A stretch of 63,352 bases of DNA, counting the filler, from Reticulomyxa filosa (lineage: Eukaryota; Protista; Foraminifera), in the NCBI GenBank assembly GCA_000512085.1. It is 23 parts of 23 records of this genome, joined end to end, with 100 filler letters (N's around TTAATTAATTAA, not from the genome) between each part and the next. Parts side by side here need not be neighbours in the genome. Positions count along the whole stretch, not along the records: positions 5,117 to 12,127 come from ASPP01014659.1; 22 more parts are not named here. One strand, 5' to 3'. Of this stretch, positions 5,117 to 12,227 are shown piece after piece. Made by a program: the position numbers and the translations under genes. The notes beneath the pieces were generated by a model. It saw nothing but the letters and a program-made list of their open reading frames with translations, was not told the DNA's origin and searched no databases. The number at the start of each line of letters is the position of its first letter. Within the stretch, counting starts at the first letter, position 1.

Positions 5117-5172
5117 ATGCCTTACACTTTTTTTTTTGTTGAGATTCTGATGTTTCATTTTTAAATAAAATG

Positions 5173-5201
<29 letters not shown>

Positions 5202-5203
<2 letters not shown>

Positions 5204-8200
5204 CGAAAGCTCAGTTGGACCACTTGGCCTCTGCAAGACCGGATTTGTGGAGTTTGAGTGCCTTTGTCGAAACGTACATTGAAAAGCTAACGCCGGTTTC
5301 CATGACGAAATACAGAAATGTTACGTGGGACGATATTCCAATCGACGAACGAAAGGGCTTTCTAACGGTGTTGTATACATGGGCGTGTCAGTATTTGGAT
5401 CAGCCCGTTCAACGAAGCTTGAAGTCCTCCATTTTGTTCGCTTTTGTCAATCTGCTACAACAAGAGGTTTGTTATTTGTTATTGTTGTTGTGCTACAATC
5501 GAGCGAGGCTTTGAACAACTTTTTTTTTTTTCCCATTATATATATCATACATCGCATATCACGTTATTCAAAAATTAACATTAACAAACTAGGATAAGTA
5601 TCACTTTGAAGCATTTTTAGAGTATTTAAATATCCCCAGAAAAAGTCAATTCAATTCCAAGTTGGTCCAAACCTTTGAAAAAACTACCAAAAAAGAGTGG
5701 GGATACGGGACACTGGCCGAATTTGGACACTCTTATTCCTTTTTCAATGGCTATCGAAACACTCCGAGATGGACTGCAACTAGGTCTTTTTTTTTTTTTT
5801 TTTAGGACGTTGCGAAACACATATTCAAAAACATTACAAAATAAATAAATAATGTGTGCATGTGCATGTCAAAAGTGACGAAACACTGGTGAAAGAGTTT
5901 TTAATGAAGCTGTTTACTGACGAATCGAGCTGGCATGCGTTGTTGCAAAGCGAAATGAAAACTCAGTTTGCCAAACAATTTGTGGAAAAGAACGGAAAGA
6001 AATCGATTCGAGAAGCGTTCCAAGAACTGATCGACGACACCGTTCTGGAACAATGGGAAGCAGAAGGGTACCTCTACAGCGGACAAACCGCCAATGCCGC
6101 CAACTACATTGAAAAGCTGAACAAATTGCAAGGTTTAAACTATGTCAACCTATTGAAAAGTTTTGTGCATGTGTGTACTTTTTTTTTTTTTTTAGCAATG
6201 CAGCAATCAATAACGTGCACTGCATGTTTTAACAAGAAAAATATTGTATGTATGATGTGGTTAAAAAGATGCCGTGGAATTAGAGTTTGTCGAAAGCAAT
6301 CCGAAATATGTGGACATGAAGACGCCCATAGAAATTGAAGTGATAGCGAAAAACACAGGGGAAATATTGTGCAAAGTATTTGAGATCAACACAAAGAGTT
6401 ACTTCCGAGAAAAGCAAACGGATTTGAAGAGCGACATGGAATTGGATGGATTTCACGCGGCTCACGAGTGGGTGACCACGCCAACATTCAATCATCCCTT
6501 CCATCGTGTCAGGGTCAAAATCTCTTTACCTTCTGAGTTGCAAAAGAAAAGAGGAGTGGTTTTTATTGACCTGATTGCAAATGGACAGCATAGTCGAGGT
6601 ATTATATTTTGTATTCTATCTCTCGCACACATTTAGATCGTTGTAATAAATAATACTATTATTACAATTGTACACATATATGACATATATAAATATTTTT
6701 TTTTTTTTTTAAAAAAAAGCAATAATCAGACGAGGAGAAATTCGAACGATTGAACGCATAACAGCCAGAGGACACACGTTTCAAATGCTAGACGAAAGTG
6801 GAGAGCTAATAAAAAATGGAACGATTTGGATGAGCGGACATGCATATCACTCGGACGACAAGGGCGAGATTGATATTCCATTTAGCACCGATCCAAAGCC
6901 ACAAAAGATTGTGTTGCAACGCAACGACGACCCTGAATTCAACGTGCTGTCTTCGTTTGATCACAAATCGGAAAGCTACGAATTGCAATGCGGGTTTTAT
7001 TTGGACAGAGAGCAAATCATTGCAAAAAAGGTCGCAACGGTGTTGGTGCGTCCGGGCATTCTGTTGAACGGCTTTCGCACGACAGTGAAGATAATTGAAA
7101 GGCCCAAGCTATCGATCGAAATCAAGACGTCGGACAGTCAGGGAGTGAACAAGACCTTTAACAACTTTAAGCTGTCTGATGGGGCGGAATCAGTGGCAAA
7201 GATCAGTATTCCAATGAATACGACGGAAGTGTGTGTTCGATTGGAATGCCAAGTGACGAATCAGTCGCAAAATAAAAAAGTGGGTCTGGAAAAGTCACAA
7301 ACATTTCGAGTCAATGGCATTCACCAAACGTCACAAATCGAGTCATTTCATTTGATCCCCGCCGCCGCAGATGCGTCTTTCCTCGTTGCATTGTACGGAA
7401 AGACGGGCGAAGGCATTGCCCGCGCTGTGTGCAAACTGGAATTGACGCACCACTTTTTCACAAAGCCCATTGAACTGGACGTGATGACAGATCACGCCGG
7501 ACATATTCATTTGCCCGCCATGCACGGCTTCCAAGCGCTGGAAGTATCCCACGGGACCGTTCGTGCTAAGTGGGACTTGGAATGCACTTTGACCATCAAT
7601 GACACGCCCAGGACCGTTCACATGATCGAAGGAGGGGCCCTTCATATCCCTTTTGTCCTCAATCATCACACCTCCTCCTCCTCCGATGCAAAGTCGGCCA
7701 AGCTGTTGCTCTGGGACGAACTGCACGCCAATATCTTCCCCGAACATGTGCATTACGACGCCACACACAAGGAAATTGTCGTGCACAAATTGAAGGCGGG
7801 AGTCTATACCTTGGCCGTCTTTGGTCATTCTCGTCACATTACCATTCATGTCACCCAAGGCAAGCTTCTCGATAACAACTTTGTCGTCAATAACAATGAA
7901 ATTTTGCAATTGTCAAACGATAGACTTTTGCAGATCTCGCACATTGTCGGAAACAAAAAGGATGGCGTCCAGATTATTTTGAATGGTTTTGGCAGTTACA
8001 TTAATTGATCCACATTTGTGTATATTGAAAAATAATACATAATAAGCACAAATATTTTATAATTGATTCATTGAATTTGCTGTATATAGCTAACACACGA
8101 GTACACGTGCTATTGACTCATTTCATGCCCACGTTTGAGCTGAACGATCTTTTTAACAAGCTATCGAGCAGCAATCTTACCAAAGGCTTTCTTTCTCATG

Positions 8201-11200
8201 CCAACAGCATATACTTGAAACAACGGACAATTGGAGAAGAATATCGCTACATCCTGGAGCGACAAAAGGCACCGCAATTCCTTGGCAACAGCTTGCAAAG
8301 GCCGACGCTGCTGATCAAACCGTTGGAGAACCAGGCAACCGACACGGTCACGCAAACGGTCAAGCGAGGCGAGGCGTTGGAACAGTATGATCTTAGCGGA
8401 TTTTCATCAATGGCGGCCAAACGGGGCGCACTATCCAGTTTTACCATCTCCGCTGCTTCGAATACGGACGCCAGGTGTTTGGACTTTTTGACAACCGAAG
8501 GCAAGGTGTTGTACAACTTGAGACCCAACGACAAGGGCGTGGTGAACATTGACTCGTCTCACATCCTTGGCAGTCACACTTTGTTGCGATGCATCGCCAG
8601 TGACGAAGAGCGAGTGGTCTTGTCTTCTTTGCCTTTGTGCAAATTGAACAATGATGACGACAATGAAGAAAAGAAGAAGATATTTGATTACGGAGATTTG
8701 CGACTGTTCCCTGGATTGCATCCAAGCAAATGCTTCACGCAACAACGAGACATGGAATTGCTGTCCACTAAAAATGCTTCGTACAAAATCAACGATTTCA
8801 AGTCGTCGGAAGTGGTGACATTCGACAGCATCCGCGACGTGTTCAACTTTTATTCGTCGCTGTCGTCTGTCGTCAGCAGCAAGGACTTGCGAAGGAACTG
8901 GGATTTCCTGAGCGAATGGCATGGCTTGGGACGCGAAAAGCAGATGGAATATGTCGATGAGTTCTTTTCCCACGAACTTAACCTATTTTTATTCAAAAAA
9001 GATACCAAGTTTTTCGACGAAGTGTGCAAGCCCTTGATTCGCTCGAAATTGCGCAAAGACATTGTCGACCTGTATTTATTGGGAGAGTTTAAGAAGCTGG
9101 AACAATATGCCACTTTGGAGTGGCTGAGTCGAATGAACGCACTGGAAATCATTCTGGTGGCTCATGCGAGTGGCAAGAAAGAGTTCCGCGGCTTGGCTAA
9201 GAAATACTTTGCCAAGCAGCAACAACTCATCGAGGACAATGCCGAAGCATTGGACAAACTCTTTACCACCGCAATCAAGTGTAAACAAGTGCAACAAGAA
9301 ACACAAGCACAAGAGGAGGAACAGCAAGAACAAGAGGAAGAGCGAGAGAATGACGATGAAAACGAAGAAGACGAAGAAGAGATAGAGGATAACCAAGACA
9401 ATGCCTTTGGAGGGACGTTTGATTTGCATGGCGGTAGCATGAGCATCATTGTCAAGACGTTGACCGGCAAAGCTGTCGAGATTATGTGTGACCCCACCGA
9501 TACCATCCAAAATGTCAAGGCCAAGATCCAAGACAAGGAGGGCATCCCACCCGATCAACAACGCCTAATCTTTGCTGGAAAGCAACTGGAAGATGGCAGG
9601 ACGTTATCTGATTACAACATTCAGAAAGATAGTACTTTGCATTTGGTACTGCGTCTCAGAGGAGGCTGCTTTGTCGCAGGCACATTGATTCGAATGGCTG
9701 ATGGAACACTACGAAAAATTGAGGATATTGTAAATGGTGATATTGTGTATTCCATGGAAGAAACAAAGCAAGTTATCAATTATTATATAATTGCATATAC
9801 ATTATTGTATACATACATACATACATATTGTATACGTCATTATATAATTGTAGGTAATATCAACATGTGCGGTGAAAAATGTGTTCCGATTCGTAGTTTG
9901 CGAATTGTGCGAGATCGAGTTTAGCGATGGAACGAAGATGGTAACAACACCGCAACACTTGATTTACGTGGTAAATAAGGGCTGGAGCTGCGTGGACCCT
10001 TTTGTCGAAAACAGCAAGCACGACAAAGTGCTGGCCAAAGGGGACCAGGTAATAAAGTTGGACGTGAGCGACGGCAAAGTCGGTTCCCAAAACGAAGCAG
10101 TGTTTGTGGCAAATATCCGACACTTGACCAGCGATCGGGACAATGAAGAGGCCTTGGTGTACACGCTGCATTTGGACAATGGCTATCACACGTATTTCGC
10201 ACAGGACATTCTGGTCCACAACACGTTGCGACTGACCATTAATCTGCCCGATTCCTCCACGTTGATATTGAATGTCGAGCCAGAGATGACCGTCGCCACC
10301 ATCAAATTGTTGATTCAAGTGCAGCGAGGATTTGACATGAGCCAGCAGATACTGATGTGGCAAGGCAATGCTTTGTCCAACACTGCAACTTTGGCATCGC
10401 ATAGCATTTACAAAGTTTAAAAAAAAACTCTTTACTAATTTGCAACTTTTTGTATAAAAAAAAAAAAAAAAAAATGTAAGAATAAAATAAAGTTGGTTAT
10501 CTTTGTTTGATTGATGAATATTTTTTGTTGTATCTCATTATTGCCCGCAAAATAGGATGCTACGTTCGATTTGATCATACCAGGTTTCAGCGCAAAAAAA
10601 GAAAGACGGGGTAAATAAATTTGTGACACAATGTGTAATATTTTTTTTATTTATTTTTCCAAATATTTCAAAGTAAGCAAGTAGTTTTATAATCAAAAGC
10701 TAACAAATGAAATTAATGATGTGGATGTGTCCTCCCAAATCATAAGTGGGCCGATTCAGCTAGCGGCGACGTAAAGAAGCGACGAGCAATGAAAGATAAG
10801 CAGCTGTTTAAGCAGTTGGATCAAACGAAAGAGTACTGTGAGACGTACTACTATAAAGTGCCGTTTAAAAAGCTGCAAAGCGATTTAGTGCCTTTGAATA
10901 AGTTTTGGTGCAGCTATGCCGAGCATGTGTTGAGCGATGAAAAAGAGGAAAAAGAGGAGCGTGCGTTTTTGTCGAAGCATTGGCTAATTGCGACCGATTC
11001 ATTGAACGAAATGCTGCTCGTGTTGGGTGTATTGGACTTGCCATTGACAGCAGAAGGACCGACATTACACGAAAACAGAGAAGACAAGCGTGATCCATCG
11101 GTGACACTGGTGACCAATGACCCCTGCATTGTGTTGGTGAAGCAGTTGAAGGAGATTCCGTTGACCAAGACTTCACTGGTATCGATCAACGCGTCATTCT

Positions 11201-12048
11201 TCGATCCCGACGACACACACATTCGAGACGAAAACGGGGAAAAGCAAGATAAGCTGGTGGACACGTTCATCCCCGGCAAAGTGTATGGTATGCGAGCCGT
11301 GGCCACTAATTTGTCGTCCAATGCTCTGTCACTAGAGTTGCTCGTGGAACTGCCTCAAGGATCGATCCCGGTATCCAGTGGCGCGTATACCAAAACATCA
11401 TTCTTGCAACTCAACGCCTTCAGCACCACTCATCAATGCTTTTACTTTTATTGGCCGCAACCCGGCAGCTACGGACTATTCCCCATGTGCGTGTCCCGCA
11501 AAACAAAGGTCATTGGCACCGCCAATGTCCCCAAACAACTACACGTGGCCATCCCGCAAAAAGACAAGCCTTTAGATGTCAAGTCGTGGAAGGATGTCAC
11601 GCTGCATGGAAGAGACGCCGATGTGCTCGCCTTTTTGCAACACAATAATCCCTTTGATCTCGATTTGTCTTTCATTTATCACCGCTGCAAAGACGCTGCC
11701 TTCTTCGAGGCCGTTTGCAAAACCCTGCGCATTTACGGTTTGTTCGATCATCGCATTTGGGCTTATGCCATCATTCACCACAAGTGTGTGCAAGAATTGC
11801 AAGAGTATCTGCTTCGAAACTCGTACTTTATCCAGAATGTCTTGCAACCCGTTTTCCGAGTTTACTTTTATAAATAAATAATTATATAAATATATACATA
11901 AAATATATACGTATATACATATATTCATTTGTTATGCCGACAGTCAAAGTGGATCAAATATGATGACATTGAAAATAATGCATTTGCACATTTGGAATAC
12001 ATTCCTTTGGTAAATGCTCGAGCTCATTTGTTGGGCCAAAAAAAAGAA
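5202..12048 (+). CDS. Very large multi-exon uncharacterised protein (beta-rich, possibly macroglobulin-like) with an internal ubiquitin-Hint-UBL cassette; partial at both ends
   Basis: Co-directional ORFs (5170, 5856, 6274, 6785, 8071, 9872, 10789, 11929) separated by AT-rich GT..AG intervals. In-frame joins checked by hand: introns 9772-9853, 10415-10555 and 10611-10759. Confidence 0.8.
9439..9666 (+). other. Internal ubiquitin domain (76 aa, ends LRLRGG)
   Basis: [11 protein letters not shown]...[12 protein letters not shown]; 64/76 identical to canonical animal ubiquitin by manual alignment. Confidence 0.97.
9667..10222 (+). other. Hint (intein-like/BIL-type) autoprocessing domain, 158 aa, split by intron 9772-9853
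   Basis: Block A '[29 protein letters not shown]', block B '[14 protein letters not shown]', blocks F/G '[22 protein letters not shown]', followed by Thr (10223-10225). Confidence 0.92.
10226..10585 (+). other. Second, divergent ubiquitin-like domain without C-terminal diGly, split by intron 10415-10555
   Basis: [63 protein letters not shown]|[10 protein letters not shown] aligns without gaps to ubiquitin (VEP17-19, K27, IQ30-31, G35, QQ40-41, G47, TL55-56, K63, T66, L69). Confidence 0.85.
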
Positions 12049-12227
12049 GTTAATTCATCTATTAAAATTCACTTTTTTTTTTTTTTTTTTAAGTGTTTAA
12101 AAATAGACCTTATACTCCCTCCCCCCCNNNNNNNNNNNNNNNNNNNNNNNNNNNNNNNNNNNNNNNNNNNNTTAATTAATTAANNNNNNNNNNNNNNNNN
12201 NNNNNNNNNNNNNNNNNNNNNNNNNNN

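Follow-up and report, generated by a model that had tools for sequence, protein, structure and literature searches.

The window analysed here is a stretch of 63,352 nucleotides, filler included, joined from 23 parts of the genome of the foraminifer Reticulomyxa filosa, and its positions 5117-12127 come from one contig of 7,011 bases (C14659) of an assembly of 101.9 Mb in 50,809 contigs. This contig carries a cassette in which a ubiquitin domain, a Hint domain and a second ubiquitin-like domain (UBL) follow one another, apparently inside the gene of a much larger host protein (Table 1). The ubiquitin starts with the ATG at 9439 and ends in LRLRGG (9649-9666), with the Gly75-Gly76 pair at 9661-9666 and Gly76 itself at 9664-9666. 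Directly after Gly76 comes the Cys1 codon of the Hint domain (9667-9669), giving the junction LRLRGG/CFVAG. The Hint domain is 158 residues long, which is too short to include a homing endonuclease, and contains TTPQH as block B (9944-9958, Hint residues 66-70, Thr67-x-x-His70), VYTL as block F (10157-10168, residues 137-140, including Thr139) and a terminal His157-Asn158 (10217-10222). A threonine at position +1 (10223-10225), which is also threonine in the closest paralog, leads into the second UBL. The layout, the residues at Gly76/Cys1, TTPQH, His-Asn and Thr+1, the positions given there, and the lack of room for an endonuclease had all been put forward in a preliminary description of this DNA and were confirmed throughout.

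Exons were searched separately against profiles, and the full-length Hint domain was searched as residues 515-676 of the public protein P0002 (ETO18620.1), which already contains the join of 9771 to 9854. The second Hint exon alone matches the Pfam family Intein_splicing (PF14890; E 7e-6, 26.3 bits, profile positions 38-155 of 155) below the gathering threshold, and the first 35 Hint residues alone reach 17-18 bits, which is likewise below the Pfam threshold. The full domain exceeds the gathering scores of both Intein_splicing (36.8 versus 35.8 bits) and the Hint family PF01079 (30.5 versus 29.7 bits), in keeping with the domain assignment first made from the residues. Its best sequence matches in the PDB (phmmer) are 6Y75 and 6TMM, both representing BIL2 of Tetrahymena thermophila (E 4e-7), and these rank above an AXH domain, a bacterial intein-like domain (2LWY, E 0.03) and inteins.

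The same relationship was seen at the level of fold. An AlphaFold2 model of P0002:439-736, based on a 25-row alignment of ubiquitin-Hint-UBL units, had a mean predicted local distance difference test score (pLDDT) of 84.9; the strand of the second UBL that is encoded by a micro-exon was not part of the folded sequence. When the modelled Hint was compared to the PDB with Foldseek, it matched 6Y75/6TMM at E 5e-15 to 4e-14, with template modelling (TM) scores of 0.85-0.91, a root-mean-square deviation (rmsd) of 2.1-2.4 Å and 26-27% identity (for 6Y75, E 5e-15, TM 0.89-0.91 and rmsd 2.1-2.2 Å). BIL2 was the top non-ubiquitin fold match, above all inteins, and the next was the Ssp DnaB mini-intein (TM 0.79). 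The Tetrahymena BUBL proteins, which the preliminary description had named as a precedent, hence provide the closest match by sequence as well as by fold.

Among the 25 aligned units, Cys1, Phe2, the block B histidine and the terminal His-Asn are invariant, while Gly76, the block B threonine and the threonine of VYTL are nearly invariant, and the window protein has every one of these residues. The other 24 units also have a UBL on both sides and Cys1 directly after a glycine. Thr139 had been taken for a peculiarity of this gene, a view that its near invariance among the aligned units contradicts; BIL2 has histidine at this position. The BIL2-like fold, the sequence homology to BIL2, the two flanking UBLs and the set of Cys1, Thr-x-x-His and His-Asn are those of a BUBL-type Hint. 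As in class 1 inteins there is a +1 nucleophile; the block F aspartate of that class is absent (Thr139), and so is an insertion at a conserved site with the host as exteins. A homing intein is ruled out, as there is no endonuclease and the insertion lies in a linker.

BIL2 is flanked by ubl4 and ubl5 and, as summarized in PMC8616854 (citing Chiarini 2021), catalyzes ATP-independent protein splicing that ends in a lysine isopeptide bond. Its locus, BUBL1 (ubl4-BIL2-ubl5; Dassa 2004 and Chiarini 2021, cited through PMC8616854), has the same order as the cassette, namely a UBL, a mini Hint domain running from Cys-Phe to His-Asn, and a UBL, with no endonuclease, and the two Hint domains have the block G motif NFFANG(V/I)L(V/A)HN in common. 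BIL2 (in the N143A crystal construct) ends in ...NFFANGVLAH(A) and continues directly with Met-Gln, whereas the window cassette has Thr+1 before the UBL; the two differ further in the His or Thr of block F, and their identity is only 26-27%. BUBL1 is a polyubiquitin-like ciliate locus that the PDB names an ADP-ribosyltransferase protein, whereas here a single unit is found in an unrelated giant foraminiferal protein, and its first domain is a near-canonical ubiquitin, unlike that of the BUBL1 unit. BIL2 is affected by Zn2+.

Other Hint-containing systems are more distant. Canonical mini-inteins such as Ssp DnaB have in common with the window domain the horseshoe Hint fold, Cys1, TxxH, His-Asn, a +1 Ser/Thr/Cys and a length of about 150 residues. 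Canonical inteins occupy conserved functional sites of essential proteins and use the host as exteins, whereas the cassette lies in a putatively disordered linker, flanked by a ubiquitin and a UBL of its own, and its block F lacks the aspartate that is usual in canonical mini-inteins. A-type BILs, in the account given by PMC7765530 (citing Amitai 2003 and Dassa 2004), consist of a Hint domain with a C-terminal His-Asn in variable regions of non-conserved proteins; the same account (PMC7765530) describes self-cleavage at either end and processing that is possible without a +1 nucleophile. They differ from the cassette in being bacterial and in having no ubiquitin-like flanks, a comparison made by description, with 2LWY as the sequence match at E 0.03. 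Hedgehog/Hog proteins, as portrayed in PMC7765530, have the Hint fold and carry out an N-S acyl shift at a Gly-Cys bond, with the thioester resolved by an external nucleophile. Such a domain is ruled out here by the lack of a sterol-recognition region and by a Hint that ends in His-Asn, with the UBL following at once; unlike in Hedgehog/Hog, C-terminal cleavage or splicing is possible since the Hint ends in His-Asn and has a C-terminal flank.

The first domain of the cassette retains all 7 ubiquitin lysine positions, and its predicted model, compared to the PDB with Foldseek, is 82-84% identical to solved ubiquitin chains at an rmsd of 0.5-1.0 Å. It combines the ubiquitin fold with the C-terminal LRLRGG that mark a conjugatable type of ubiquitin. 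The second UBL has a ubiquitin-like fold in the predicted model and ends in ...DLIIPG without Gly-Gly, so it is itself not conjugatable. Its last strand is predicted to be supplied by the micro-exon peptide DATFDLII, which comes after an AT-rich gap of 138 nucleotides and an AG and matches the last strand of ubiquitin (ESTLHLVL in ubiquitin).

Two further stretches border these domains. The peptide at 9409-9438, just before the ubiquitin, resembles the last strand of a UBL followed by GG and a junction residue, and TFDL occurs both here and in the strand that closes the second UBL (10556-10585). The cassette may have been copied from a tandem UBL-Hint array, starting mid-unit. Directly after the second UBL, a Lys/Arg-rich stretch (window 10586-10800) reads AKKERR...KKRRAMKDK, with KKSLLKKSRKKK...KKK in the paralog (L009 130-210); it is a possible nuclear localization signal, which would head the C-terminal half after cleavage.

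Table 1. Features of the cassette and its host gene in the R. filosa window
Feature	Position	Strand	Evidence and remarks
Host N-terminal part	5856..9300	+	Exons ~5856-6131, 6274-6600, 6785-8008 and 8071-9300; at least 1,060 residues verified by homology
Linker, acidic, low-complexity, Q/E/D/N-rich	9301..9438	+	Translation; Pfam gives low-complexity noise only
Ubiquitin domain, 76 residues, ends LRLRGG	9439..9666	+	Pfam PF00240, E 2e-29, profile positions 1-72
Hint residues 1-35 (Cys1-Phe2..., block A)	9667..9771	+	Weak N-terminal hits: Hint_2, Hint, Hom_end_hint, Vint
Predicted intron, 82 nucleotides, GT..AG, phase 0, AT-rich	9772..9853	+	Sequence, GC dip, paralog, cDNA-derived homologues, public model
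Hint residues 36-158 (block B, block F, terminal His-Asn)	9854..10222	+	PF14890, E 7e-6; BIL2 fold match
Thr+1 (10223-10225), then second UBL, strands 1-4 up to the Lys63 equivalent	10223..10417	+	PF00240, E 6e-9, profile positions 2-59
Predicted intron, 138 nucleotides, GT..AG	10418..10555	+	Unspliced reading gives in-frame TAA at 10418-10420; paralog has GT after the equivalent Lys codon
Small exon: DATFDLII (last strand of second UBL), then basic stretch	10556..10610 (or 10583)	+	Translation, paralog equivalent
Proposed intron, donor GG/GTAAAT at 10611, acceptor AG at 10758-10759	10611..10759	+	One of six frame-keeping combinations; inferred
Host C-terminal part, at least 362 residues, runs past the contig	10760..11877	+	Paralog matches 34-66% identical; model is a beta-sandwich, then helices

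The public model of the cassette gene, ETO18620.1, is named "Ubiquitin family protein", has 760 residues and corresponds to window positions ~8125-10700. It is a fragment of the gene, with an internal Met as its start, and the micro-exon for the last strand of the second UBL is skipped; at its end, ...HSIYK is followed by KDGVNKF..., which is apparent intron sequence, and we consider the model truncated. The cassette host gene extends past the 5' end of the contig. The Hint domain of this gene is not mentioned in the public annotation, and no description of it was found in the searchable literature.

The predicted intron within the Hint domain (9772-9853) has a GC content of ~0.30 compared to ~0.47 in the exons, the join of 9771 to 9854 is the same in the public gene model, and the paralog on contig C9069 has an intron at the equivalent position. 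In an alignment to a unit from a Nonionella transcriptome, exon 1 covers positions 1-111 and residue 2 of exon 2 falls on position 113. The two exons are collinear with this cDNA-derived foraminiferal homologue, with neither gap nor overlap at the junction.

Collinear matches to all exons upstream of the cassette and to the downstream part (10789-11877) were found on other R. filosa contigs, namely C22545/C9069, C4659, C1986, C11021 and C11020 for the upstream exons, and C11090, C4659, C1986, C27842, C11020 and C11021 for the downstream part (34-66% identical). The host represents a multi-paralog family found on at least seven R. filosa contigs, and in the paralog contigs the flanking host domains occur in the same order and on one strand. 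The closest paralog (49-66% identical) is split over C22545, C9069 and C11090 and has the cassette as well, in the form ubiquitin-GG/CFVAGTL-Hint-HN/T-UBL. The distant paralogs on C4659, C1986, C11020 and C11021 (27-38% identical) have both flanking domains and no match to the Hint/UBL exon; when read directly, the inter-domain stretch of C4659 is a Q/N/D-rich low-complexity linker. C27842 matches the downstream host domain only.

A further 12 homologous proteins have both flanking domains in one chain, including Planctomycetota and Verrucomicrobiota proteins from metagenome-assembled genomes (MAGs), unnamed metagenomic proteins, two eukaryotic proteins from EukProt and one further R. filosa paralog. 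In these 12, the domains are joined by a low-complexity linker of 108-255 residues in which neither ubiquitin nor Hint was found. The contig of the cassette encodes at least ~1,060 host residues before it and at least 362 after it, and the paralogs run ~450 residues further. These comparisons support the view that the cassette is embedded in a disordered inter-domain linker of a conserved host protein of probably 2,000 residues or more. The placement inside a giant protein, as originally suggested, is upheld by flanking domains that are collinear as one polypeptide in cassette-free paralogs and homologues, and by the last UBL strand of the paralog, which is open into the host domain. Among the relatives examined, the cassette appears confined to two closely related R. 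filosa paralogs, and the simplest reading of the sequences is one insertion before these two diverged.

The identity of the host itself was also searched. Pfam assigned neither the host exons nor the long open reading frames of the paralogs to any family. The long C1986 frame over the C-terminal domain has relatives that are 27-33% identical over ~800 residues, including Planctomycetota and Verrucomicrobiota MAG proteins. A model of the C-terminal domain (pLDDT 81) shows a beta-sandwich plus helices, and its fold matches to macroglobulin or Ig-like domains were weak and generic (TM 0.2-0.3 on the query), for which reason such an identity was not accepted. A search of the ESM Atlas with this domain returned unnamed clusters only.

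Taken with the predicted model, these sequences make it probable that the element is a BUBL-type autoprocessing cassette, composed of ubiquitin, a BIL/Hint mini-domain and a UBL, in a disordered linker of its R. filosa host. After translation, the Hint would fold and Cys1 would attack the Gly76-Cys1 bond in an N-S acyl shift, producing a ubiquitin-Gly76 thioester with the whole N-terminal half of the host still attached. Excision of the Hint and rejoining of the host would be the most likely single fate, if at somewhat less than an even chance, and is favored on the grounds that both paralogs keep Thr+1 and the cassette-free relatives work as single chains. Rejoining could proceed through an ester with Thr+1, cyclization of Asn158 and an O-N shift, or, in a manner like that of BIL2, through an isopeptide to one of the two lysines that are conserved in the second UBL. 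By both routes, the host would end up as an uninterrupted protein whose linker holds a ubiquitin-UBL pair, linear or branched. Possible but less likely, even taken together, are the alternative fates in which the thioester undergoes hydrolysis or aminolysis and Asn drives cleavage on the C-terminal side; an N-terminal half ending in free or conjugated ubiquitin Gly76 and a C-terminal half starting with Thr-UBL would result. It is unlikely that the cassette makes the host self-conjugating, with a lysine on some other protein resolving the Gly76 thioester in trans. By that route, the N-terminal half of more than 1,000 residues, capped by ubiquitin, would be joined to targets without E1, E2, E3 or ATP, and cyclization of Asn158 would free the C-terminal half.

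Ubiquitin activation normally takes place through the ATP-driven E1-E2-E3 cascade. To our knowledge, BUBL-type Hints are the only natural chemistry-only route to a ubiquitin-like C-terminal thioester, and they have been studied in one Tetrahymena locus. The Hint-made ubiquitin thioester as a form of E1-free activation is already established for this domain type by the work on BIL2, as reported in PMC8616854; the E1-independent conjugation envisaged in the preliminary description thus stands as a type of reaction and does not as a novelty. The novelty lies in the organism, in the near-canonical sequence of the ubiquitin, in Thr+1 and in an intein-like position within the linker of a conserved, giant protein; the chemistry is already known. 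A BUBL-type module under selection in Foraminifera, inside an unrelated giant protein whose other examined relatives are without it, would serve as a natural experiment on how the module acts on its host, that is, whether it rejoins, cuts or conjugates it. Mechanistic and protein-engineering studies would also gain a second, divergent BIL.

Several observations weigh against an autoprocessing cassette in a continuous host. Splicing, transfer or cleavage activity is suggested by the residues and by analogy with one studied homologue of ~26% identity. The +1 residue is Ala in most foraminiferal relatives, so a +1 nucleophile is not a general requirement of the family. The Hint of the paralog has a frameshift after ...IRHVYA (L002 ~1770-1790; C9069 ~2220-2240), which may be a homopolymer or assembly error or mark a decaying copy. 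Cleavage after Gly76 by a deubiquitinase, independent of the Hint, is plausible. The three introns are predictions, the 3' continuation hangs on a micro-exon of 18 codons plus a predicted intron, and the public annotation departs from this reading after ...HSIYK, giving the protein a different end.

Some of these points would fit a Hint that is a dead relic or spacer, in which case the internal ubiquitin would be cut at Gly76-Cys by ordinary deubiquitinases and the host would be a two-part precursor. Deubiquitinases process polyubiquitin and ubiquitin-ribosomal fusions, the ubiquitin here is near-canonical with its LRLRGG end, and besides the frameshifted paralog Hint, LRLRGGCFF junctions in stop-interrupted frames on two other contigs (C24352 and C29046, see below) suggest decay in this genome. 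Against this, all catalytic positions of the family are intact in the window copy, and Cys1, TxxH and His-Asn would be unnecessary in a spacer. When the two paralogs that carry the cassette are compared, synonymous sites have reached saturation (pS 0.64-1.0), whereas the proportion of nonsynonymous differences (pN) is 0.107 in the N-terminal, 0.207 in the middle and 0.083 in the C-terminal part of the Hint, compared to 0.265 in the ubiquitin, 0.355 in the second UBL and 0.20-0.27 in the host domains. The cassette has been under long-term purifying selection, with the Hint, and its catalytic ends above all, constrained at least as much as the host. Within the cassette, conservation is highest at the Hint termini (pN 0.08-0.11 versus 0.265 for ubiquitin). 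With the caveat of the frameshift in the paralog Hint, this strong constraint on the catalytic ends argues against a dead relic, which we regard as improbable.

The connection from the second UBL to the downstream host domain bears on whether the cassette and both host parts belong to one gene. Exon 2 (9854-10417) ends at the Lys equivalent to ubiquitin Lys63, and in both paralogs a GT comes right after the equivalent Lys codon. The paralog equivalent of the last UBL strand, DTTLELKQSGDG..., stays in one open frame across a Lys/Arg-rich stretch and on into the host domain downstream. Six frame-keeping pairs of donor and acceptor were enumerated between the micro-exon and the downstream domain, for which short junction translations only were compared. 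The donor at 10611 preserves the frame with the acceptor at 10758-10759, as does the donor at 10584, and from the sequence the former is at least as plausible as the end of the small exon. The preliminary description was right about the existence of this exon, and its end, then placed at ~10585, has been revised to that extent. A DNA alignment of the gap between UBL and downstream domain with the paralog misaligned the micro-exon. It is very unlikely that the gene model is an artefact in which a truncated UBL and the stop at 10418-10420 close the protein and ATG 10789 opens a separate gene for the downstream domain: the in-frame TAA directly after ...HSIYKV with an A-run behind it, the ATG lying 3-6 residues ahead of the start of homology to relatives, the nearby end of the public annotation and the predicted status of the introns would all agree with it, but the UBL would lose its last strand while DATFDLII follows an AG in the AT-rich gap, the paralog has DTTLELKQ in one open frame with the downstream domain, the conserved GT and frame-keeping splice sites exist, and both domains are in one polypeptide in all 12 of the 12 relatives and in the same order and strand in the paralog contigs.

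The module has a wider distribution in Rhizaria. The preliminary description had named no rhizarian case, an impression that proved mistaken: the LRLRGG/CF pattern occurs 7 times in this genome compared to 2 times for the reversed control, and many relatives are found in transcriptomes of Nonionella and Bolivina. In an exhaustive profile search, 551 relatives reached E <= 1e-3, and ubiquitin-like domains are present in 38 of the best 150. About 30 units are of the type GG/CF...LVHN/(A/S/T)MQIF, and every named one comes from the foraminifers Nonionella stella and Bolivina argentea. Several units of this type sit in larger proteins with a MYND finger, a PUB domain or an ADP-ribosyltransferase domain.

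In these foraminiferal units, a single additional residue (A, S or T) stands between the Hint and MQIF (P0001, P0005, P0007 and P0017), and the window cassette has Thr before its UBL. Where this residue is Ser or Thr, a canonical splice nucleophile is available, which is absent from the ciliate prototype. An insertion of one or two residues at the monomer junctions of polyubiquitin, GG-(A/S/T)-MQIF, is specific to rhizarians according to PMC3014934 (citing Archibald 2003). The polyubiquitin of R. filosa itself reads RGG-A-MQIFVK (C19824:6311-6340 and 6542-6571, minus strand), with junctions 231 bases apart. The Hint of the foraminiferal units is placed precisely where Gly76 meets the rhizarian junction residue, between the two, while BIL2 of the ciliate is without such a residue; ordinary rhizarian polyubiquitin has the same junction position and no Hint between Gly76 and the inserted residue. 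The rhizarian insertion (A/S/T) may correspond to the +1 residue of such Hints, as their footprint or their requirement. A literature search for a link between the junction insertion and the Hint +1 residue found no paper, and the cassette offers a possible connection to this long-used, unexplained feature of rhizarian polyubiquitin.

R. filosa has a second family of ubiquitin-Hint genes, found on C15908 (L006 423-2137), C35094 (L007 403-1446) and C10247 (L020 3-1034), all on the minus strand, with Hint-plus-tail exons on C43753 (L004 14-658) and C18736 (L005 33-677). Its members have an N-terminal region of ~230-260 residues, ubiquitin with LRLRGG/CF, an intron immediately after the junction, the Hint and a Cys-rich, zinc-ribbon-like tail. 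The Hint exceeds the Pfam Hint gathering score and ends in VLVHN/GSG with no +1 nucleophile. The N-terminal region gave no Pfam match and nothing above 0.80 in the ESM Atlas.

On C24352 (L018 400-720) and C29046 (L019 1-100), polyubiquitin-like units with internal stops end in LRLRGGCFF followed by a stop, and these look like decayed ubiquitin-Hint junctions or unresolved introns. The Hint subfamily with CF.xGT...LVHN also occurs as tandem arrays of up to 7 Hints with joints of 1-4 residues (HN/KGG/CF) in metagenomic proteins (P0009, P0012, P0024, P0028 and P0074); none of these includes ubiquitin, and one is labelled as a Nanoarchaeota MAG.

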